Source: Octopus bimaculoides | Taxonomy: Eukaryota | Assembly (NCBI RefSeq): GCF_001194135.2 | Contig: NC_068992.1 | Coordinates: forward strand, 28,745,221-28,809,220 | Reading direction: 5' to 3' | DNA: 64,000 nucleotides | Part shown: one piece after another, positions 4,922-63,136 of the stretch | Layout of the letters: each line of letters starts with the position of its first letter | Numbering within the stretch: position 1 is the first letter of the stretch | Position numbers and translations under genes: made by a program | Notes under the pieces: generated by a model | Databases searched by the model: none | The model's input: the letters and a program-made list of their open reading frames with translations, nothing else | What the model was told of the DNA's origin: nothing

Positions 4922-5090
4922 AGGCGCAGGAGTGGCTGTGTGGTAAGTAGCTTGCTTACCAACCACATGGTTCCGGGTTCAGTCCCACTGCATGGCACCT
5001 TGGGTGAGTGTCTTCTATAGCCTCGGGCCGACCAAAGCCTTGCAAGTGGATTTGGTAGACGGAAACTGAAAGAAGCCCGTCGTATGTATG

Positions 5091-6021: not shown

Positions 6022-6694
6022 CGACGACGATGATGAATTTAAAAAGAAAAAAAGACAAAAACCCTCTAATAGTAATTGAGAAGTGAAGTAGCCATCTCCT
6101 AATACAAAGGCTTTCCTGTATCAGAATACCACCACATTAACATCTCTGCATCAATACACAGACAGAACACTCTATAGCTGTATATAGACACCTAAATAGA
6201 ATAATTGAGTGTGATTGGATTAAAAACACTCAGAATGTTGTACTGAGGAGGTGTTAAGAGCTTTCCCACCAATAAAGGTGTTTTATTACACAAAGGGTTT
6301 TACTAGGGTGATTGGTTCAATTGATTCTGCTATTTTATTTGCTGTTGATATCATATCTATCATATGATCTTTTTCTCCCTGTCTCTCTCTCACCCCACAC
6401 ATATTTGCACATAAATCTACACATGCACATATTTGTAAACCCCCGCCCCCCCACGCATGTATACACACACACACACACACACGTATATGCCTGTATAGGC
6501 ACAAGCATGGATGCGTGGTTAAGAATTTTGCTTTCCAACTATGTGGTTTTGAGTTCAGTCCCACAGCATGGCACCTTGGACAAGCAGCTTCTACTATACT
6601 CTCAGGCTGACCAAAGCCTTCTGAGTGGTCTGTAGTGGATGGAAACTGAAAGAAGACCGTCATACATACATACACACATATATATATGTAGACA

Positions 6695-7145
6695 CAGGCA
6701 TGGCTGTGTGGTAAGAAACTTGCTTCCCAACCACATGATTCCAAGTTCAGTCCCATTGTGTGACACCTTGGGCAAGTGTCTTCTACTAAAGCCTTGGGGC
6801 TGACCAAGGCTTTGTGGGTGGATTTAGTAGATGCCCATTATACATACATTCGAGCGAGATCGTTGCCAGTGCCCCTGGACAGGCCCTGTGCAGGTGGCAC
6901 GTAAAATACACCATTTCGAGCGTGGCCGTTGCCAGCACCCGCCTGACTGGCTCTCGTGCCAGTGGCACGTAAAAACATCCACTACACTTCTGTAGTGGTT
7001 GGCGTTAGGAAGGGCATCCAGCTGTAGAAACTCTGCCAAATCAGACTGGAGCCTGGTGTCGCCTCCTGGTCCACCAGTCCTCAGTCAAATCGTCCAACCC
7101 ATGCTAGCATGGAAAGCGGACGTTAAACGACGATGATGATAATGA

Positions 7146-12727: not shown

Positions 12728-13703
12728 TAGTCTCTTCCTCTCTCTCTCTCTCTCTCTCTCTCCCCCATTATTTTTTTTCCTTTGTTTCATACACAGATCC
12801 AGCACTAAATACATTGCCGAGTGCATGTGTGCAGAAGAAGGAGTGTGGAATAGAGACAGACAAACAATGTAAGAAAGAAAGAAATGTCTAGACTCAACAA
12901 AGTGCTATCCAGTCAAGAACTGGAGATCTATCAAATTCCCTACTCCTATACCCTACACCAATTTATAGCCTTTCCACTTCAGTTAAAAATCATTATTTGG
13001 TGAAAAGTGATGAACTGGCAGAATGATTAGAGCCCTGCAGTATTTGTTCTGGTTCTCTCCCTTCTGAGTTCAAATCCGGCAAAGTACTGGGGTCAAAGAA
13101 AACAATTATTCACTTACTCCAAATTTTTGACTGCTGGCTTTGTATGAAATAAGTTTTCACAGATATGGCTGTGTGGTGAAAAAGCTGCCATTGAACAACA
13201 TGTTGGGCAAGAGTCTTGTACGATAACATTGGGGCAACAAGTGTCCTGTGAGTGCATTTGGTAGACAGAAATTGTGTGGAAGTCTCTCAGATATATAATT
13301 GTTAAACAGGACAGTAAACATTAAGGCATTGGGTGAGATGCTGTACAAACAGTTGTAGTACATCATTTCGTGCAGGTGTGCCTCGTCAGGTGACTTGTCA
13401 AAAGGTACCTCATTCTTTAATCTCTGTTTCATTTATTTCAATTTGCTTGTAGCTACTTGCTTACAAGAGAAAACATTCTAGCTCATGTTTTCTCCTGTAT
13501 GTAAGTAGCTACATTGCGTAACTGAACTGAAAACTTTGTGCTTGGGAAACACTCATCAGAGCAGACTCCTTACAGCACACCCCAATCTAATGTAAATTCA
13601 AATATAAAAGACAATAAATCACTGCAGTTCTATATTTAAGAGATGAGGAATTATGTATATTATTTACATTTGATAGATATTTGTCCTCATCTTGTTTGTT
13701 GTT

Positions 13704-13749
13704 AACACAATGTTTCGGCTGATATACCCTCCAGTCTTCATCAGGTGCC
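13704..13749 (-). ncRNA. Minimal type I hammerhead ribozyme, partly decayed
   Basis: GGCAC-CTGATGA-A-GACTG..CAGCC-GAAA-CAT-T-GTGTT; one stem II mismatch; helix III ACGT mutated to ACAT. Confidence 0.7.
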
Positions 13750-13821
13750 TTGGGGAAATTTCGAACCTGGGTTCTCATTCCTAAGGTATTTTTCGATGTT
13801 GTCATTATTATTGTTATTATT

Positions 13822-13865
<44 letters not shown>

Positions 13866-13914
13866 CATCAAAAATTATCTTAGGAATGAGAACCCAGGTT
13901 CGAAATTTCCCCAA

Positions 13915-13960
13915 GACACTTCATGAAGGCTGGAGGGTATATCAGCTGAAATGTTGTGTT
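13915..13960 (+). ncRNA. Minimal hammerhead ribozyme, core mutated (likely inactive)
   Basis: GACAC-TTCATGA-A-GGCTG..CAGCT-GAAATGTT-GTGTT; CTGATGA changed to TTCATGA, plus CpG decay. Confidence 0.6.
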
Positions 13961-14045
13961 AACAACAAAGAAGATGAGGACAACTATCTATCAAATGTAA
14001 ATAATGAAAATAGTATAATAAATCACTGGACCATTTTTATGTTCT

Positions 14046-14398
14046 TTGCTGTGTGGTAAGAAGCTTGCTTCTCAACCTCAGAGCTCCAGGTTCAGTCCCA
14101 CAGCATGGCACCTTGAGCAAGTGTCTTCTACTATAGCCTCAGGCTGACCAAAGCCTTGTGAGTGGATTTGGTAGTTGGATACTGAAAGAAGACTGTAATA
14201 CGTGTGTGTGTGTGTGTGTATTTATCTCCCTGCCATTACTTGACAACAGATGGTGGTGTATTTATATCCCCATAACTTAGTGGTTTGGCAAAAGTGACTG
14301 AGAATAAGTCCTGGGGTTGATTTCTTCAACTAAAACCCTTAAAGGCAGTGCCCCAGCATGGCTACAGTCAAATGACTGAAACAGATAAAAGAATAAAA
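14046..14398 (+). mobile_element. SINE family A, near full-length
   Basis: Head, (TG)n and 3' part colinear with 4922-5363. Confidence 0.85.
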
Positions 14399-16119
14399 TT
14401 TCTTGAACTTTGATGCAGTATAATCCTACTTTTCTCAACTCATTTTAAGGACATCAACCATTGTGTTACAACAAGGCTGTATTGTAAGTATCAGCTGCCG
14501 TTCTTTAGCTCCAAGTAAAACTGAGATCCAGCAGATCAATTATGAAAGATGTGATAGCTGTAATCAACCTGTTTTTTAATTTTTTTTTTATTTTGGAATA
14601 CAATGTTCAATATGTCCTAGTAGTGAGTAATTTGAGAGAATTTGATTGCTAGCATGAGTAGGTTGACTGGCCCATGTATAAATTCTCGTTTGCAACCAGT
14701 GTTTTAATTATTGAAATAGCTTAAACATTAAAATCTGGTTTTGCTGAAAATTCTCCGCTGGGAGAGGGTACGCTGTCAGTTATGTCACAGCTGTAAATAA
14801 TAAATTACTCTGCTCAAACAGGTCAAAGGTATTCTCTATGAAGCATAACAAAAAGTGGCAAATGCTGGTAGTGGTGGTAGTGCAGGTGGTATGAAGCTAG
14901 CTGTTACAAACCGAACCACCACTGGTTCTAACTCTGCTTGAGATCATCAACAGAGGATGTGTGTGTGTATGTGTAAGTGGGAAGGTGAGAGAAAGAGAGA
15001 GAGAGTGCAAAGAGAAGGAAGAATGGAGTGTAATTGTGTGTGCATGTACATAGGCTTGCATATAGAAAGCAATAGAAGATTTGAGAAAAAGCTAACAATA
15101 GAAAAAGAGAAGGAAAGCATTATACATAGAGATTATGTGAGAACAGAAAGAGAGTGAAGATAGAGCGGGGAGGAAAGAGAGTGTGCTAGTGATAAAATGA
15201 AGGTAGAGTCATAAGTATAGAGAGTAAGTTTGTCATATGAGAGAATGCAAGAGAGAGGGGCATACAAGTAGACAAGGTGAACACTGTACCTCCACATAGT
15301 ACCTAATAAATGACAGGATCCAACCTAAGGCAGCATCAGTAAGGAGAAAATGTGACTGATTCAATTGGCATTATAGGGAGACCAGTAAACACAAGAGTTT
15401 CTTGGACAATGATGATAGATTGACAAACAGAATATTTAGCGCAAACAAACAGGCGCCAGGGAAAACATGGAACAGAATGCAGTTTATTATTTTCATAAAC
15501 TACTTCTCCCGAAAGACAATAGAAATAACGAGAAAAAAAAAGAAGATTACAATTATGGTGATGGCAGTGGTGGTGATGTCATTTATTTATTTAAGTAATA
15601 AATAATGGAAATATAAAATATTAATACGAGTATCTCACATGAAAATGTCTAGATTTGATTCTGCAGAACAACGGGTTGGAAATATGAATCCCCATCTGCA
15701 TTTAGAACCATACACATGCATCACATTCAGACACAGCAGAATACACAGCACATGCATAATACATATTTGTTGACAAACACAATGCATCTGACACATGCAC
15801 ACATGCACACAGAGCGAAATCTGTTGATAAGTTGGTGATAGCAGAGAGGTATGTTGGAAAAAAAGAGGAAAAACCTATGCATTGATACAGGAAGATATGC
15901 ATAAGCAAATTTGCACATGCGTGCACAGATGCATATGCACATACTGAAACACCTATGTAGTTTACTAACTGAATTAAAAATATGAGAGAAAGATGCACAT
16001 TTATAAATGCACATATTCAAGTGAATTTTTTTCGATATGTATCCACCTGTGCATATGCATATCTATATGTGAATATGTTCACATATACAACTGTATATCC
16101 ATGCACACATGCATTATAT

Positions 16120-47239: not shown

Positions 47240-47624
47240 GGTTGTTGGCACTCCGTCGCTTACGACGTCAAGGGTTCCAGTTGAACCGATCAATGGAACA
47301 GCCTGCTCGTGAAATTAACGTGCAAGTGGCTGAGCACTCCACAGACACGTGTACCTTTAACGTAATTCTCGGGGATATTCAGCTTGACACAGTGTGACAA
47401 GGCTGACCCTTTGAATTACAGGCACAACAGAAACAGGAAGTAAGAGTGAGAGAAAGTTGTGGTGAAAGAGTTCAGCAGGGTTCGCCACCATCCCATGCCA
47501 GAGCCTCATGGAGCTTTAGGTGTTTTCACTCAATAAACACTCACAACGCCTGGTCTGGGAATCAAAACCGCGATCTTATGACCACGAGTCCGCTGCCCTA
47601 ACCACTGGGCCATTGCGCCTCCAC
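47240..47624 (-). mobile_element. tRNA-derived SINE, third family, full-length
   Basis: A box TGGCCCAGTGG, B-box-like GGTTTTGATTCCC; 10-bp TSD TTCTACAATA at 47230-47239 and 47625-47634. Confidence 0.85.
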
Positions 47625-54779: not shown

Positions 54780-56260
54780 TTTTTCAGTTGGTTCCTGTGT
54801 CTTTTTTGTATGCCTTTTCTACTTTTTACCCAATACCTCATTTTACCTATGCATTTGGTAATAACGTGATCTTCCCAACTCTGCTTTCCATTCTTGTATG
54901 CCCTCATATACACCTTTTTACCAATCTTGCTATGTTTTTCCAAGCACTTTTTCTTTTCTTGCCAGGTAGCAATTTATTGCAGACTGATTTTACTTGCCTC
55001 ACAAACATCAACTCAGCAAGTGAGCTACCTGCTGGTGTATTCAGATTTGGTGTCACAAGGTACACTTTTAAAAATTGTTGTAGAGATACCACCTCATCTG
55101 TGACTATCTTATTTGATTTTCTAAGAGCTCTTTTGAAGGTATCAACAAAGCATTTTTCCTGTCCATTAGATCTAGGATGGTATGGTGCCATAGTTATATG
55201 TCCCACAGCAAATGTTTCACAAAATTTTTTTAATTTGCTAGACACAAATTGCGTTCCATTGTCAGACACTATTTTGTCTGGGATGTCAAATCTTGCAAAC
55301 AATTTGTGTATAAAATTTATCACTGTTGAGGAAGTTGATTTTTTATACTTACAAATTTCAGGCCATTTTGAGAAACTATCATCTACCACTAAGTAGTGAG
55401 CACCATTTAAAAGACCAACGAAATCTATGTGCAGTCTCGAACACAGAACATCTACTTTTGGACAATGTTTACTTTTTATCGTGGGCAAATCTTTAGTTCG
55501 TTTTGGTTTACATCCAGGTGTTCCACTCTGTTTCATTGCAATTTTTTGTTTCAGTCCCTCAGCTACATTCGAAACTTCAAATAGACCAACTATATTTCCA
55601 CACAAAACACTTATGGGCATATTCCATACTTTAAATAGTTCCATCCACTCTGTGCTGAATAAACGAAGTGAACTTTTTAACACATATATCTTTGACTTCT
55701 TTGTTTGACCTCGAAATGGTACATTACATATGAATTCATAGAAAAAATATAATCTATTACCTGTAACACCATGTGCTACCTTTTTAGATTTAATTAATTT
55801 TGGCTTACTGACATATTTCCGTGATTTTTTGTTTATAATGGTAATATCACTACCAGTGTCCAATTGCATTTTAACACTTGTATTTCTAATTTTCACCTTC
55901 ACAAATTTTCTCATCATTATACTACTAATTTCTTCCGATAACATACTATTTATTGGTTTTCCTTTGTTCTGCCGTTTTGTCATCTTTGCTCTACAGTGTG
56001 TCTTTATGTGTCCGATATTACCACAACAAAAGCACTTTGCTTTTTTAAATGGACAATTATAACTTAGGTGTATATCTCCACGTGCAAAATAGATTTATTT
56101 CCTGATTTTTGTTGTGTTTCTTAAAAAACACTTTATTCTGACTATTTCACACTTGCTTTACTTGAAAACAATCTTAAAGTTCAATTTCCTCTGTGTCATG
56201 TCTTAATTTGACTATCCTTCTGACACTTGCTGTAAGGTTATATCTGTTTGTGAAATAGAA
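54780..56260 (-). mobile_element. Ty3/Gypsy remnant: gag tail and CCHC knuckles, aspartic protease, integrase; RT/RNase H absent
   Basis: TLQQVSE..VKLRHDTEEIE; CPFKKAKCFCCGNIGHIKTHC; LDTGSDITII; HIDF..VSDNGTQF..PYHPRSNGQ; frameshifted W..H..KRHRNQL tail; no LTR found. Confidence 0.9.
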
Positions 56261-56950: not shown

Positions 56951-57044
56951 ACTATTATGATAATACAGTTCTATATTTAAGAGATAAGGTATTATGTACA
57001 TTATTTACATTTGATGGATATTTGTCCTCATCTTGTTTGTTGTT

Positions 57045-57090
57045 AACATAACGTTTCGGCTGATATACCCTCCAGCCTTCATCAGGTGTC
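57045..57090 (-). ncRNA. Minimal type I hammerhead ribozyme (core intact, one stem I mismatch)
   Basis: GACAC-CTGATGA-A-GGCTG..CAGCC-GAAA-CGT-T-ATGTT. Confidence 0.8.
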
Positions 57091-57162
57091 TTGGGGAAAT
57101 TATGAACCTGGGTTCTCATTCCTAAGGTATTTTTTGATGTTATTATTATTATTATTATTATA

Positions 57163-57236
57163 CAGGTCACTGCCTGGAATTGAACTCGGAATCTTGGGGT
57201 TAGTAGTCCGCGCTCTTAACCACTACCCTATATGCC
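57163..57236 (-). promoter_or_regulatory. tRNA-like Pol III internal promoter (left arm)
   Basis: Reverse complement: TAGGGTAGTGG A-box variant, GAGTTCAATTCC B box, GGACTACTAACCCC anticodon-like arm. Confidence 0.75.
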
Positions 57237-57298
57237 AGTGGGCAATTATGGAGTGAATTTTAGGGCTTAGAAATCTAATTCACTCCATAATTGCCTAC

Positions 57299-57369
57299 GG
57301 GCATATGGCGTAGTGGTTAAGAGCATGGGCTACTAACCCCAAAATTCTGAGTTTGATTCCAGGCAGTGA

Positions 57370-57373
<4 letters not shown>
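57299..57373 (+). promoter_or_regulatory. tRNA-like Pol III internal promoter (right arm)
   Basis: A box TGGCGTAGTGG (57306-57316); B-box-like GAGTTTGATTCC (57349-57360). Confidence 0.8.
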
Positions 57374-57429
<56 letters not shown>

Positions 57430-57481
57430 CAACATCGAAAAATACCTTAGAAATGAGAACCCAGGTTCGAAATTTCCCCTA

Positions 57482-57527
57482 GACACCTGATGAAGGCTGA
57501 CGGGTGTATCAGCCGAAACGTTGTGTT
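57482..57527 (+). ncRNA. Intact minimal type I hammerhead ribozyme
   Basis: Stem I GACAC/GTGTT; CTGATGA; extra A; stem II GGCTGA/TCAGCC; GAAA; loop-less palindromic helix III ACGT; predicted GUU cleavage after 57522. Confidence 0.88.
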
Positions 57528-58384
57528 AACAACAAACAAGATGAGGACAAATATCTGTCAAATGTAAATAACGTAAATAATATGATAATGTATAGGTAGG
57601 AAACTGCTTGATGATATATAGAAAGAGACTAAGCAACTAGAAGTAAAATAAAAGTGAGTGAAGGAATGAGATGAGATGTTTATCAAATTGCCCAAAGTGG
57701 CAAACAAGAGTAAGAGTGAGTGAGAGAGAGAGAGAGAGAATGAAAATTAGTGGGTTGGAGAAAGTGATACATTACACCAGACATTACACCAGACCAAGTG
57801 GTTGCTATCGTTTGACCAAATGGAATGAACAATCACCATAACTCTGAGAGAGTGAAAAGATATAAATCTTCCAGTTGTGATGAATAATGGACGATTTCCC
57901 ATGATACCTGAATTTTGCCATTACCAAGACACAAAACAGTCATTTAATCATTTAATCAAATTGACAATTATTTTTACTAGTGTTAAGTCAAGGAATTTTA
58001 TGCCGCTTTAACTAAGATGAGAAATGGGAACAATCTTGAAGTACATTTAAATAGCAGTAGAAAACAAAATAAATCCTTGTGGAATTCCTGTTTTACCATG
58101 AATATTCTAATGAATAAACTTCTTGACTGTTGAAAATGACAAATCTTTCAGTGGTCTGTAAATTATATGGTAATAATTTTGCAAGTATAAGCTGGCAAGC
58201 TGATGGAATTCTTAACACTCCAGGCAAAATGCTTAGCAGCATTTCGCCAGTCTTTAAGTTCTGAGTTCAAATTTGCCTTTCATCTTTTCAGGGTCAATAC
58301 AATAAGTACCAGTTATTGACTTACTCCAAAATTGCTGGTATTGTGCCAAAATTTGAAACCAATATTTTTTAAATATAGTATTAT

Positions 58385-61449: not shown

Positions 61450-62439
61450 TGTCTGTGTTTTTTTCCCCAAAACTGCATGACAAATGGTTTGATTAATTTA
61501 CATTCCTGTGGAGAGAACAATATAAATAGATGCACATACACACTGTTCTTTTGTCTTGACATCATGTGATTGTTGTAAACAAGTGTTTACAGGTAGTGTT
61601 CTTTGTTTCCAATTTTCCATGAAAACCTATCTGGTCATGGGGAAATTATTACCTTGGCTGCAAACAGATAAGGTTTGGCAACAGGAAAAGCATCCAGTCA
61701 TAGAAAATCCACCTTAACAAAGCTGGGACCAACCCACTTGAGCATGAAAAAGTGCATGTTAAGCTGATAAGGAACACATACACACGAAACTACATACGCA
61801 TATCCATTTAGAAATGTGTTAGAAAGCTATGAAAGCATGAAGACAAAATTACAGAGAAAAAAAATTATGGTAAAACCAAAAAGAAGGCAAAAAAGAAATT
61901 AGATCTATTAATGGTAAATTGTTGGTAAATGGAGAAGGGACACACACACACACACACATGGCTTTCAAATGGCACCCCTGCCCCCACTCCCAGTTCATCC
62001 TAATATCCAGTGTAATTATTTCCAATTTTACTAATGATCTACTCTTTACTTAAAACACATACATTACTGACACAGGCTATTAAGGATAATAACAGCAAAA
62101 ACAACAACTATGATTGAACCTTGAACAGGTCTCTCAATTGTTCATTGTTGCTAGCCAACTGACATTGTTAAAACCCACACACAGTTACCATATTTGTAGA
62201 CATTACTAATATCAATTGCCAGCTCAATCCACCTCCTCCTCCTCCACAATGATGAAGTCATGACCCGCTTTCAATACTCAAAAACAGTTGTGCTGTCTGT
62301 TGTTCCCTCCTTAAAATAAGTAGACTAACACGGTTATACATTATTTTCATAAATGACATAATCTAACCTCCATTCTGACTCTTTCTCAAGTGTCACAGGT
62401 GTCAGTGAACGAACACATACATACATGTGTACATACATG

Positions 62440-62650
62440 TGGCTTAGTGGTTAGAGTGTTGGACTCACGACTGTAAGACTGTGGTTTCAATTCCTGGATC
62501 TGGCGACATGTTGTGGTCTCGAGCAAAACACTTCATTTCACCTTGCTTCAGTCTACTCAGTAGGTAAAAACGAGTAATCCTGTGACAGGCCAGCATCTCA
62601 TCCAGGTGGGGAATTTATATTCCATGAAAACTGGGAAACCAGCCTTATCA
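62440..62650 (+). mobile_element. tRNA-derived SINE (fourth family)
   Basis: TGGCTTAGTGG A box, GGTTTCAATTCC B box, then GAGCAAAACACTTCATTTCACCTTGC body; 3' end uncertain. Confidence 0.65.
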
Positions 62651-63136
62651 GTTGGCATGATTCAAGAAGGTAACTTTTTCTAGTACCTCACATGCATGTA
62701 CATGTGTATTATCATTGAGTGATGTTGGGGTACAAATATACAAAGCCCAATATACCCATCATGACTGCCCATCTGATAAAAGCATACTAAGCACATGCAT
62801 CACAACTATATAGGCTGTTTAAAGATGATGACTAAAGCACCCATGTTTCCAGGAATTAATTATTCAAACTCCAAAGAACCCCTCTCAACACATGGCTATG
62901 ATGCTCCCCACCACTCATGCTTGTGATCAGAGATGCACATATTGTCAGCCACTAAGGGGCATGTTCGTTGGTTACAATCAAGCAAGTGACAAGCAAATCC
63001 GTGTATTAAGTAGAATATTTGGTGTAGCCCATCTTTTACACCAAGACAAATCATGTACATGATAACAATTCTAATTAGTTAAGATCAAAAGCCATGAGAT
63101 CCACTGCCTAGTACATGACAAGCTTCTTTCAGTTTC

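Follow-up and report, generated by a model that had tools for sequence, protein, structure and literature searches.

Within the window, i.e., the whole 64-kb stretch of Octopus bimaculoides DNA that we analyzed, positions 56965-57577 are occupied by two inverted arms that are 88-91% alike and bracketed by a 12-bp target-site duplication (TSD; hereafter copy 1). Each arm reads in the order leader, tRNA-like head, (AAT)n, minimal hammerhead and 3' end (Table 1). The inverted arms align in an outer pair (56990-57161/57411-57582; 172 nt, 91% identity) and an inner pair (57131-57259/57277-57405; 129 nt, 88% identity). Divergence between them amounts to K2P 0.10-0.13 and their (AAT)n tracts are of unequal length, so the fold-back was not made during assembly. 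A first-pass annotation, prepared from the sequence alone, had proposed a tRNA-headed hammerhead fold-back at this place, and the structure is real, with every listed part found where it had been located. Its flanking TSD also exists, although not as a clean 10-mer, since the repeat (direct repeat D5) is 12 bp long and matches at 11/12 positions. We consider that the locus is likely to be one old insertion of a ~300-nt non-coding octopod retroposon (SINE).

Table 1 Features of the two palindromic copies (positions in the window; strand of the sense unit)
Feature	Position	Strand	Evidence or remark
Copy 1, left TSD TATTATGATAAT	56953-56964	.	D5, 11/12 vs 57578-57589; adjoins outer end of left arm
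Copy 1, tail of left (inverted) arm only, 30-nt 3' extension, sense TAATACCTTATCTCTTAAATATAGAACTGT	56965-56994	-	no counterpart on right arm
Copy 1, left-arm 3' region past cleavage site, AC-rich block AACAACAAACAAGATGAGGACAAATAT	56995-57044	-	arm alignment
Copy 1, left-arm minimal hammerhead, one C-A mismatch atop helix I	57045-57090	-	relaxed descriptor match 57085(-); alignment
Copy 1, left-arm body 5' of hammerhead, with B-box-like CCAGGTTCATAAT	57091-57138	-	arm alignment
Copy 1, left-arm internal microsatellite, (AAT)n in sense, ~7 units	57139-57162	-	
Copy 1, left-arm tRNA-derived part	57163-57237	-	A box 57220-57230, B box 57176-57186, 44 nt apart
Copy 1, left-arm leader, 22 nt	57238-57259	-	
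Copy 1, palindrome center TTAGGGCTTAGAAATCT, 17 nt, unique filler	57260-57276	.	matches neither tail nor body
Copy 1, right-arm 5' leader AATTCACTCCATAATTGCCTAC	57277-57298	+	both arms begin here; putative RNA 5' end
Copy 1, right-arm tRNA-derived head	57299-57373	+	A box 57306-57316, B box 57350-57360
Copy 1, right-arm internal (AAT)n/(AAC)n microsatellite, ~19 units	57374-57431	+	
Copy 1, right-arm body, with B-box-like CCAGGTTCGAAAT at 57461-57473	57432-57481	+	
Copy 1, right-arm PLE-type minimal hammerhead, intact	57482-57527	+	strict descriptor
Copy 1, right-arm 3' region, ends at proximal (tail-less) terminus	57528-57577	+	arm alignment
Copy 1, right TSD TAATATGATAAT	57578-57589	.	direct repeat D5
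Copy 2, left TSD AATAAATCACTG	13613-13624	.	12/12 vs 14017-14028
Copy 2, inverted arm: tail ~13625-13650, decayed hammerhead 13704-13749, (AAT)n, headless	13625-13831	-	self-BLAST; alignment
Copy 2, sense arm without full tail; hammerhead 13915-13960, core mutated (TTCATGA, GAAAT)	13833-14016	+	
Copy 2, right TSD AATAAATCACTG	14017-14028	.	

Modules of the unit

The unit is composed of three modules, i.e., a 22-nt leader (which precedes the tRNA-like part in each copy-1 arm) with a ~75-nt tRNA-derived head carrying RNA polymerase III A/B boxes, an internal (AAT)n, and a 3' module of ~150 nt that comprises the minimal hammerhead and an AC-rich block and that can end at either of two 3' termini ~23-30 nt apart. 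By its sequence, this last module appears to be of the kind known from the pseudo-LTR of Penelope-like elements (PLEs). In the right arm, the A box TGGCGTAGTGG fits TRGCNNAGTGG at 11/11 positions and the B box AGTTTGATTCC matches at 9/11, with 44 nt from start to start; a mirror pair is situated on the minus strand at 57230. Judged by box match and tRNA-like spacing, both arms contain an internal Pol III promoter. Four A/B box pairs occur in the 64 kb, all of them with a spacing of exactly 44 nt, when 0.03 would be expected (100 shuffles). The heads of the two arms are 87% identical (K2P 0.126), and neither sense unit of copy 1 includes a TTTT run. The A/B boxes, the absence of TTTT, the second B-box-like CCAGGTTCGAAAT and the PLE-style minimal hammerhead, all previously pointed out, were confirmed.

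The head is a tRNA-derived SINE head and not a tRNA or a functional tRNA gene. ARAGORN predicted no tRNA in the window or in four further loci, the Rfam tRNA model failed to match a 226-nt slice even at E<=10, and no tRNA or hammerhead model of Rfam matched either the whole window at the gathering threshold or three slices at E<=10. The microRNA "hits" returned by Rfam merely reflect the long hairpin. Cloverleaf stability is likewise absent from the head segment (fold z-scores +0.76 and +0.10); hence, what had been termed a tRNA stands as a SINE head with A/B boxes but not as a foldable tRNA (ARAGORN, Rfam, fold z-scores around 0). The right-arm head is weakly homologous to the heads of ordinary octopus SINEs, one in the window (62420-62497) and one in locus L003 (9326-9398). 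These ordinary tRNA-derived SINEs (window 62420-62660; L003 9320-9620) have a distantly homologous head, the same A/B spacing and, like copy 1, CCAGGCAGTG after the T-arm, but they run on into a conserved core domain (CTTGAGCAAAACACTTCA), whereas the copy-1 family switches to (AAT)n and the PLE module.

The predicted right-arm hammerhead can be written as GACAC CUGAUGA A GGCUGA-CGGGUGUA-UCAGCC GAA ACGU U^GUGUU, with cleavage predicted 3' of 57522. A strict descriptor of the minimal hammerhead (min-HHR) gave a single match in the window versus none in 200 randomized windows. The catalytic boxes are in type I order (CTGATGA 57487-57493, GAAA 57515-57518), also in the left arm, the helix III loop is absent and a palindromic ACGU (within AACGTT) joins the core directly to the cleavage site, an extra unpaired A is located between A9 and G10.1 alongside a G10.1-C11.1 pair (the descriptor required a bulge of 1), and helices II and I have 6 and 5 bp, respectively. 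Across 8 instances 87.5% of the helix cells are paired (helix II 91.7%, helix I 82.5%), compared to 23-48% when the helices are slid, and two compensatory pairs occur in the hammerhead helices of the related L004 family. The published hallmarks of min-HHRs are CUGANGA and GAAA boxes, no helix III loop, palindromic positions 15.2-16.2, a nucleotide between A9 and G10.1, a G10.1-C11.1 pair, a helix II of 6-8 bp and a helix I of 4-5 bp (PMC4209133); at the sequence level, the copy-1 hammerhead displays every one of them. Rfam hammerhead models did not match the copy-1 motif, as expected for a motif without helix III. A GTTGT-GTTA-ACAAC hairpin was considered as a real helix III and discarded, as it would unpair A15.1 and abolish helix I. 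Without a helix III loop, the motif could cut solely as an RNA dimer, via the ACGU palindrome; a generic cofold of two hammerhead RNAs yielded no useful dimer model.

Further copies and the search for a partner

The arms of copy 2 form inverted repeat I1 (180 nt, 89%) and are joined inside the microsatellite. An independent palindromic copy of the same architecture, with its own TSD, was recovered from a read-archive contig (L005). Its sense unit, which adjoins a differently truncated inverted arm, begins within 2-4 nt of the copy-1 leader start (26/32 identical) and does not include most of the tRNA-like part, such that a complete head is seen at the DNA level in copy 1 only. The 5' ends of three arms (both of copy 1 and the L005 sense arm) fall within 2-4 nt, and the leader recurs at the start of L005 and in P0124, an O. 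bimaculoides copy captured as an ORF. The internal (AAT)n is also found in copy 2, L005 (degenerate) and L007, and in P0144 and P0157 it shows as poly-N or I/L tracts. L003, L005 and L007 have a conserved AC-rich block, and the related L004 family a loosely conserved one. The three insertions resolved at the DNA level (copy 1, copy 2 and L005) each have a tail of ~23-30 nt on one arm only, and the tail-less arms of copy 2, L005 and L007 stop within ~10 nt of the copy-1 proximal terminus. Two ORF-captured copies (P0129 and P0173) read through inverted-copy junctions, and the P0129 palindrome seems tailed on both arms, meaning that the one-sided tail rule is not absolute. Altogether, a ~300-nt non-coding unit that is dispersed and multi-copy, with three TSD-flanked insertions and a common 5' end, is what is expected of a SINE.

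Module-derived ORFs make up 65 cluster representatives, related families included. Copies were found in O. bimaculoides (P0121 and P0124) and O. sinensis (in L003), and related families form head-to-tail arrays of ~129-nt units (P0130, P0156, P0128, P0137 and others). In P0144, P0157, P0124 and P0173, head-derived peptides are collinear with the module, by short matches (E 0.001-0.05). Owing to this linkage of head and module in L005 and in four ORF-captured copies, the fusion represents a real family and not a nested insertion. We also examined whether the central tRNA pair might have inserted by itself, as a palindrome, into a copy-2-like element; L005 rejects this, since its single sense unit has the leader/head start contiguous with the body. 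With it goes the separately inserted tRNA part that the first-pass annotation had named beforehand as the case against itself. No copies were seen in four more ENA loci (83 kb), and nothing was returned by exact-pattern scans of viral contigs and JGI metagenomes, by a protein search with antisense ORFs spanning head and body, or by an exact look-up of the neighboring integrase ORF.

Octopus genomes are known to contain recently active Penelope elements and ~900 unclassified SINE families (PMC13282606). An nhmmer search with the 3' module encountered no autonomous PLE sharing it in the 64 kb and a further 193 kb of octopod DNA, and a profile search with the open sense frame of the module against 1.84 billion representatives retrieved short ORFs only and no PLE-sized protein. 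A degenerate PLE RT is present in L001, in a PLE without the module, and no RT/EN coding sequence adjoins any copy. Given that no sequence-matched PLE was found, the partnership rests on architecture and not on shared sequence.

The integration footprint and its competing explanations

PLE insertions typically have an inverted 5'-truncated copy, a one-sided tail of 30-40 bp and a high frequency of 5' truncation (PMC8557442), and pairs of min-HHRs on opposite strands, 100-700 bp apart, were previously reported (PMC4209133). The purified PLE protein cuts the two target strands and extends each of them, its RT starts at two neighboring internal sites, the distance between which sets the tail, and its template is unprocessed RNA in which the hammerhead is upstream of the RT start sites; insertion in vitro is unaffected by hammerhead mutations (PMC11167929). 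An inverted 5'-truncated copy next to a sense copy is present in copy 1, copy 2 and L005, with TSDs of 10-12 bp, head-to-head arms of variable 5' truncation and a tail (23-30 nt) slightly shorter than the quoted 30-40 bp. To judge from these sequence features, the odd shape of copy 1 appears to be the normal footprint of PLE-type integration. Two traits had been singled out as foreign to a SINE, i.e., copied upstream sequence and a retained post-cleavage stretch. Both exist, but neither is an anomaly: the upstream sequence is the element's own 5' end, the leader that recurs in L005 and P0124, and the 55 nt (right arm) or 85 nt (left arm, tail included) kept past the predicted cleavage site are the norm for PLEs, because their RT starts downstream of the hammerhead (PMC11167929). 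The proposal of a non-autonomous tRNA-headed retroposon with a PLE-style min-HHR, integrated as a palindrome by PLE-type machinery, is supported. With regard to the template, RNA uncut at the ribozyme fits; nothing points to the suggested circular or multimeric RNA, as the 5' and 3' ends of the family are defined and neither tandem nor permuted junctions occur in it.

We postulate that the unit would be transcribed from its internal Pol III promoter, with its 5' end at the leader, through a T4-free body, and that a PLE RT/GIY-YIG endonuclease supplied in trans would recognize the 3' module. The endonuclease would cut both target strands with a 10-12-bp stagger, reverse transcription would begin at either of two internal sites 3' of the uncleaved hammerhead, and cDNAs primed from both DNA ends (or the snap-back of one cDNA) would meet at the RNA-5' ends, resulting in a palindrome with the 3' ends outside and the heads at the center. 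The hammerhead itself may simply ride along in a partner-derived recognition module and be dispensable for integration. A simple two-primer model does not predict the shared truncation point of the two arms that is seen in copy 2 and in P0129.

An improbable alternative holds that the copies derive from an autonomous PLE by 5' truncation and that the tRNA-like piece belongs to the 3' region or pseudo-LTR of this PLE instead of being a SINE promoter head. Most dispersed min-HHRs are probably truncated PLEs (PMC4209133), copy 2, L003 and P0129 are truncated at various points, and no partner PLE turned up for comparison. However, the start points of both copy-1 arms and of the L005 sense unit differ by no more than 2-4 nt, indicative of a defined RNA 5' end and not of random truncation. 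From this start it is ~30 nt to a perfect A box, with the B box at 44 nt, no RT/EN lies beside any copy and no long ORF matched the module. It is very unlikely that the family propagates in the manner of retrozymes, copied from self-cleaved, circularized or multimeric RNA. Even though a hammerhead is present, related families do form ~129-nt head-to-tail arrays and circular templates were proposed for PLEs (PMC4209133), the copy-1 family has neither tandem direct copies nor permuted 3'-to-5' junctions, its copies have defined ends, and none of them is interrupted across the cleavage site. Moreover, the two hammerheads of the palindrome are on opposite strands and so cannot dimerize in cis, and hammerhead mutations do not impair PLE insertion in vitro (PMC11167929). 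The label "retrozyme" accordingly fails, as there is neither a tandem array nor a canonical helix III hammerhead.

A LINE-dependent SINE, in which head and (AAT)n were mobilized via the microsatellite tail and the hammerhead module is a nested PLE-fragment passenger, would account for the (AAT)n directly 3' of the head, and the insertion bias of PLEs towards microsatellites (PMC8557442) could explain how the fusion first originated. We nevertheless attach a very low probability to it, for no copy stops at (AAT)n, all of them ending at PLE-type termini, the TSDs enclose the entire composite, the (AAT)n is internal, upstream of the module, in copy 2 and L007, and LINEs do not leave palindromes with a one-sided tail (PMC8557442). 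Hairpin-mediated errors can generate long palindromes and assembly gaps are many (2316 N), yet a local fold-back duplication of a single-arm repeat (by replication or repair error, or by mis-assembly) is hardly credible: the architecture and the tail asymmetry are shared by three unlinked loci that have separate TSDs, and the arms, being ~10% diverged and unequal in repeat number, must be old and not assembler copies. The reading that we favor is, as above, that of a tRNA-headed retroposon integrated by PLE-type machinery.

Relation to known elements and meaning

The octopus family comes closest to the Schistosoma Sm-alpha SINEs and to non-autonomous PLE derivatives. The combination had been thought undescribed and is less unprecedented than that, given that Sm-alpha/Sj-alpha are tRNA-derived SINEs with hammerheads and a tRNA-Gln-like Pol III head (PMC2770079), and that animal hammerhead repeats have already been hypothesized to be non-autonomous PLE derivatives (bioRxiv 10.64898/2026.07.22.740005). 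Sm-alpha/Sj-alpha and the octopus family are both short, non-coding and high-copy, with a head and a hammerhead, a likeness that is architectural only. The host of Sm-alpha belongs to a different phylum and its hammerhead is a canonical type I motif detectable in the Rfam style, whereas that of the octopus family is a loop-less PLE min-HHR that is invisible to Rfam; an internal (AAT)n and a demonstrable palindromic/tail footprint of the PLE type further distinguish the octopus family from Sm-alpha.

With PLEs (Penelope, Poseidon and Neptune; Naiad for architecture only) the octopus family has in common the min-HHR hallmarks, an inverted 5'-truncated partner, a one-sided tail, two 3' termini, retention of post-cleavage sequence and opposite-strand hammerhead pairs 100-700 bp apart. 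In contrast to a PLE, the octopus unit is ~300 nt long, has no RT-EN ORF and begins with a Pol III-type tRNA-derived head; such a head is not described for PLEs in the literature examined. The non-autonomous PLE derivatives, e.g., the short Penelope elements of Heliconius, Chlamys MRC1 and, as proposed, vertebrate non-LTR retrozymes, are like the octopus unit PLE-dependent and short, and share a PLE 3' region or pLTR, but none is described with a tRNA head or an internal Pol III promoter. Animal non-LTR retrozymes (Cervera and de la Pena 2020) are also non-coding hammerhead-bearing repeats; they are tandem with canonical hammerheads, while the octopus family is dispersed and palindromic, without tandem arrangement and without a stable helix III.

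The copy-1 family is thus a modestly new variant, and neither a new kind of mobile element nor a new ribozyme. We tentatively raise the possibility, somewhat doubtful as it stands, that it may be the first recognized Pol III-driven tRNA-headed SINE family with a PLE, and not a LINE, as its retrotransposition partner, and that insertions in which both arms are full-length may record dual-strand-primed or snap-back PLE integration from two RT start sites. PLE transposition is the least understood mechanism of retrotransposition, and the first in vitro PLE system reportedly dates from 2024. A ~300-nt element that keeps the complete footprint, i.e., both cDNA arms, both 3' termini, the junction and the TSD, offers a convenient natural substrate for models of dual-strand priming, snap-back and the role of the tail. 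A PLE-partnered SINE would, if true, extend the SINE concept to the third class of retrotransposons. Our results further suggest that part of the ~900 "unclassified SINE" families of octopus, as well as many "orphan" min-HHRs of invertebrates, may be PLE-dependent SINEs, which makes such elements relevant to repeat annotation.

Structure of the palindromic insertion

The palindrome that the first-pass annotation placed at 56956-57590 is present as copy 1, an insertion in which two inverted arms, each ~300 nt long and 88-91% complementary, enclose 17 nt of central sequence. It is bordered by a target-site duplication (TSD; TATTATGATAAT / TAATATGATAAT) and lies in an AT-rich window (35% GC) with assembly gaps. 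The left arm alone carries a 3' tail of 30 extra nt. Given that the arms diverge by a K2P distance of 0.10-0.13 and their repeat tracts differ by 12 units, the palindrome is old and real, and an assembly artefact is ruled out. A published rate, by which a JC distance of 0.09 equals about 25 My (PMC13282606), suggests an age of ~10-20 My.

Features discussed in the text (window positions unless a contig is named)
Feature	Position	Strand	Description
Copy 1	56965-57577	left arm -, right arm +	palindromic insertion
Copy 1 arm			sense order: 22-nt leader; ~75-nt tRNA-like segment; (AAT)n; ~50-nt body; hammerhead; 50-nt 3' region
Copy 1 TSD	56953-56964		TATTATGATAAT
Conserved block	57455-57479		GAGAACCCAGGTTCGAAATTTCCCC; equivalents in all arms, upstream of hammerhead
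25-codon frame	57490-57567	+	MKADGCISRNVVLTTNKMRTNICQM; ATG within CTGATGA
Second sense frame	frame-A ATG ~57444		MRTQVRNFPKTPDEGWRVYQPK…
Copy 2	13625-14016		two arms, 89% alike; found by self-BLAST
Copy 2 TSD	13613-13624		AATAAATCACTG
L005 TSD	L005 761-770		ATAAATAGTA
O. sinensis copy	L003 17290-17505		hammerhead-truncated
Related hammerhead palindrome	L004 15983-16394		ENA ERZ21867824 ctg116134l
Degenerate Penelope-like element	L001 about 13990-16000	-	O. bimaculoides CM046602.1
Integrase-like ORF	54904-55983	-	359 aa; retroviral-type integrase core (rve)
Ordinary tRNA-derived octopus SINEs (at least two families)	62420-62660; 47557-47612; 14040-14200; 6693-6763; 4939-4987	+; -; +; +; +	

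The proposed tRNA head stood in part. Both arms pair a perfect A box with a B box matching at 9/11 positions, exactly 44 nt apart, and neither sense unit includes TTTT; tRNA identity itself was ruled out, as ARAGORN, folding and the Rfam tRNA model were negative. All four A/B-box pairs in the window have the 44-nt spacing (0.03 expected by chance), and the two outside copy 1 both belong to ordinary SINE heads, to which a head profile shows faint homology, including a common ...CCAGGCAGTG... past the T-arm. In ordinary octopus SINEs, however, the head leads to a core domain, whereas here it leads to (AAT)n and a hammerhead module. Conservation within the body is highest in the block GAGAACCCAGGTTCGAAATTTCCCC, previously read as a second B box. 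As a peptide it aligns with related families (GMRTQ, GIRTG); it may form a structural hairpin (GAACC/GGTTC), act as a promoter element or be left over from a tRNA T-arm.

By direct reading, the copy 1 hammerhead is GACAC-CUGAUGA-A-GGCUGA(CGGGUGUA)UCAGCC-GAA-ACGU-U^GUGUU. As the first-pass annotation held, it is of the minimal type (min-HHR) of Penelope-like elements (PLEs), displaying the complete set of published hallmarks (PMC4209133), and a strict descriptor matched once in the window vs none in 200 randomised windows. Rfam searches returned no match to it, as expected for a motif without a helix III hairpin. Over eight instances (six arms of the copy 1-type family and two of the related L004 family), 87.5% of helix cells are paired vs 23-48% with partners slid, and two compensatory changes distinguish helix II of L004 from that of the window family; a shuffle control on the pairing was non-significant, the sequences being few and related. 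Hammerheads have decayed in most copies, notably by CpG loss within ACGT, and these copies are fossils of an intact master.

A recurrent family

Copy 2 has its own TSD, its arms meet within the microsatellite, the head is absent and a tail is found on a single arm; one ordinary octopus SINE directly adjoins it. Searching with a profile built from the open sense frame of the module recovered ORF-captured copies, whose contigs led to a further locus seen in two samples (L005/L006), where the TSD is ATAAATAGTA and the inverted arm, 76 nt long, bears a tail. Its sense unit lacks most of the tRNA-like part and opens with (TT)CAATCCATAATTACCGAAGGGCATATGGCG, i.e., leader plus first head bases, 26/32 identical to copy 1 and starting within 2-4 nt of the common start of both copy 1 arms. 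Contig L007 holds a sense copy, the contig start falling in (AAT)n, and the O. sinensis copy is truncated within helix II. The latter immediately adjoins another abundant type of octopus SINE, in antisense orientation; template switching or nested insertion could have produced this spacer-free junction. The TSDs of copy 1, copy 2 and L005 are A/T-rich with a common ATAAT/ATAAAT-like core, which may reflect an endonuclease target preference, three sites being a small sample.

An exhaustive HMMER scan with the module frame yielded 65 short ORF representatives. Among these peptides, P0144 and P0157 contain head-derived sequence, then microsatellite, then module, in sense; P0124 (O. bimaculoides) joins the leader/A-box frame to the hammerhead frame; P0173 has an antisense head running into a sense hammerhead with tail; and P0129 crosses a short palindrome. 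The tRNA part might have been a separate insertion, but the recurrent head-module linkage in independent copies excludes nesting: the fusion recurs as a family whose 5' end is defined. P0124, 94 aa long and from a gene spanning about 132 kb, is annotated as 'dystrobrevin beta isoform X1', and its predicted N-terminus MPMGIWHSGEGWRVYQPKCCVNNKQDEDKYPSK is translated SINE; the alternative first exon apparently consists of a SINE copy, either exonised or annotated as such.

Related families show tandem arrays of ~129-nt units, a retrozyme/satellite arrangement. Eleven ORFs from ENA/Logan (P0130, P0156, P0128, P0137, P0142, P0147, P0152, P0154, P0169, P0181, P0185) hold 2-3 head-to-tail repeats of a ~43-aa unit (…TPEEGRRTYRPKRCGNNNKDEDNSPKTLNDKNHQASSQKFRQ…) that, read from the peptides, would correspond to tandem hammerhead units related to the module. 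Many open with MANGIRTGDPRGFNKG, whose predicted back-translation resembles a tRNA 3' half in antisense. The L004 palindrome has 151-nt arms (84%) and a 110-nt unique centre holding GGGATTGAACC, the reverse complement of a B-box-like GGTTCAATCCC. Within the copy 1-type family itself there was no sign of the multimeric or circular RNA template suggested earlier.

Insertion footprint and the proposed PLE partner

PLE insertions show strong 5' truncation, a 30-40-bp tail at one end only and, in many cases, an inverted 5'-truncated partner directly next to the sense copy (PMC8557442); opposite-strand min-HHR pairs lie 100-700 bp apart (PMC4209133). Purified PLE protein from Anolis cuts both strands of the target and extends them, starts reverse transcription (RT) at two adjacent RNA-internal sites (the spacing between them being the tail) and uses unprocessed RNA, insertion being unaffected by hammerhead mutations (PMC11167929). 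Thus, a PLE-made copy must keep sequence 3' of the cleavage site, has two possible termini and can take the form of a head-to-head dimer. The architecture of copy 1 matches this expectation, and its "anomalies", including the retained sequence once considered un-SINE-like, are a PLE footprint.

In Anolis the RT start sites lie ~110 nt into an ORF that starts inside the hammerhead (PMC11167929). The 25-codon frame of the SINE has the same closing codon in all four arms, and the second frame, open across body, hammerhead and tail in 3/4 arms, runs 123 nt from ATG to the tail-less terminus, close to the 111-118 nt from ORF start to RT start sites in Anolis. This second frame may be a vestige of a partner PLE's ORF start; no long proteins matching it were found.

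No autonomous PLE with the SINE's 3' module was found in the octopod DNA searched, the HMMER protein scan or the L001 PLE. The latter has an RT fragment (RVT_1, E 1e-6; RYLDDCF), preceded by the motif ...ADKGSTVVIM..., and its C-terminal piece looks GIY-YIG-like; it has no recognisable hammerhead and no similarity to the module. We infer the partnership from three independent architectural hallmarks and the abundance and recent activity of octopus Penelope elements, not from common sequence. The integrase-like ORF, nearest to 'K02A2.6-like' proteins of O. bimaculoides/O. sinensis (57-65% identity), probably belongs to a Ty3/Gypsy-type LTR retrotransposon that lies about 1 kb upstream of copy 1. 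Such relatives and the ordinary octopus SINEs nearby mark the window as most likely octopod DNA.

Precedents, proposed mobilisation and possible origin

Sm-alpha/Sj-alpha are known tRNA-derived SINEs with hammerheads (PMC2770079), and min-HHRs, palindromes and tails (PMC11167929, PMC8557442, PMC4209133) as well as non-autonomous derivatives (PMC8557442) were already known for PLEs; a preprint from 2026 makes the case that hammerhead repeats of vertebrates are such derivatives (bioRxiv 10.64898/2026.07.22.740005). In the searchable literature (Repbase and Dfam being outside its scope), we found no description of a Pol III/tRNA-headed SINE with a PLE min-HHR module, in cephalopods or elsewhere.

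We propose that Pol III would transcribe the T4-free unit from the head and that a PLE RT-EN acting in trans would recognise the 3' module. A staggered cut would produce the 10-12-bp TSDs observed, RT would begin internally at one of two sites, as the two observed termini suggest, and two cDNAs would be joined, or one snapped back, into the palindrome. Equal-arm palindromes (copy 2, P0129) fit better with snap-back or microhomology joining, while two independent primings better explain the tail asymmetry and the unequal L005 arms. As to origin, we speculate that a PLE fragment inserted into an ordinary SINE, within its (AAT)n tail, which is plausible because PLEs have a microsatellite bias (PMC8557442).
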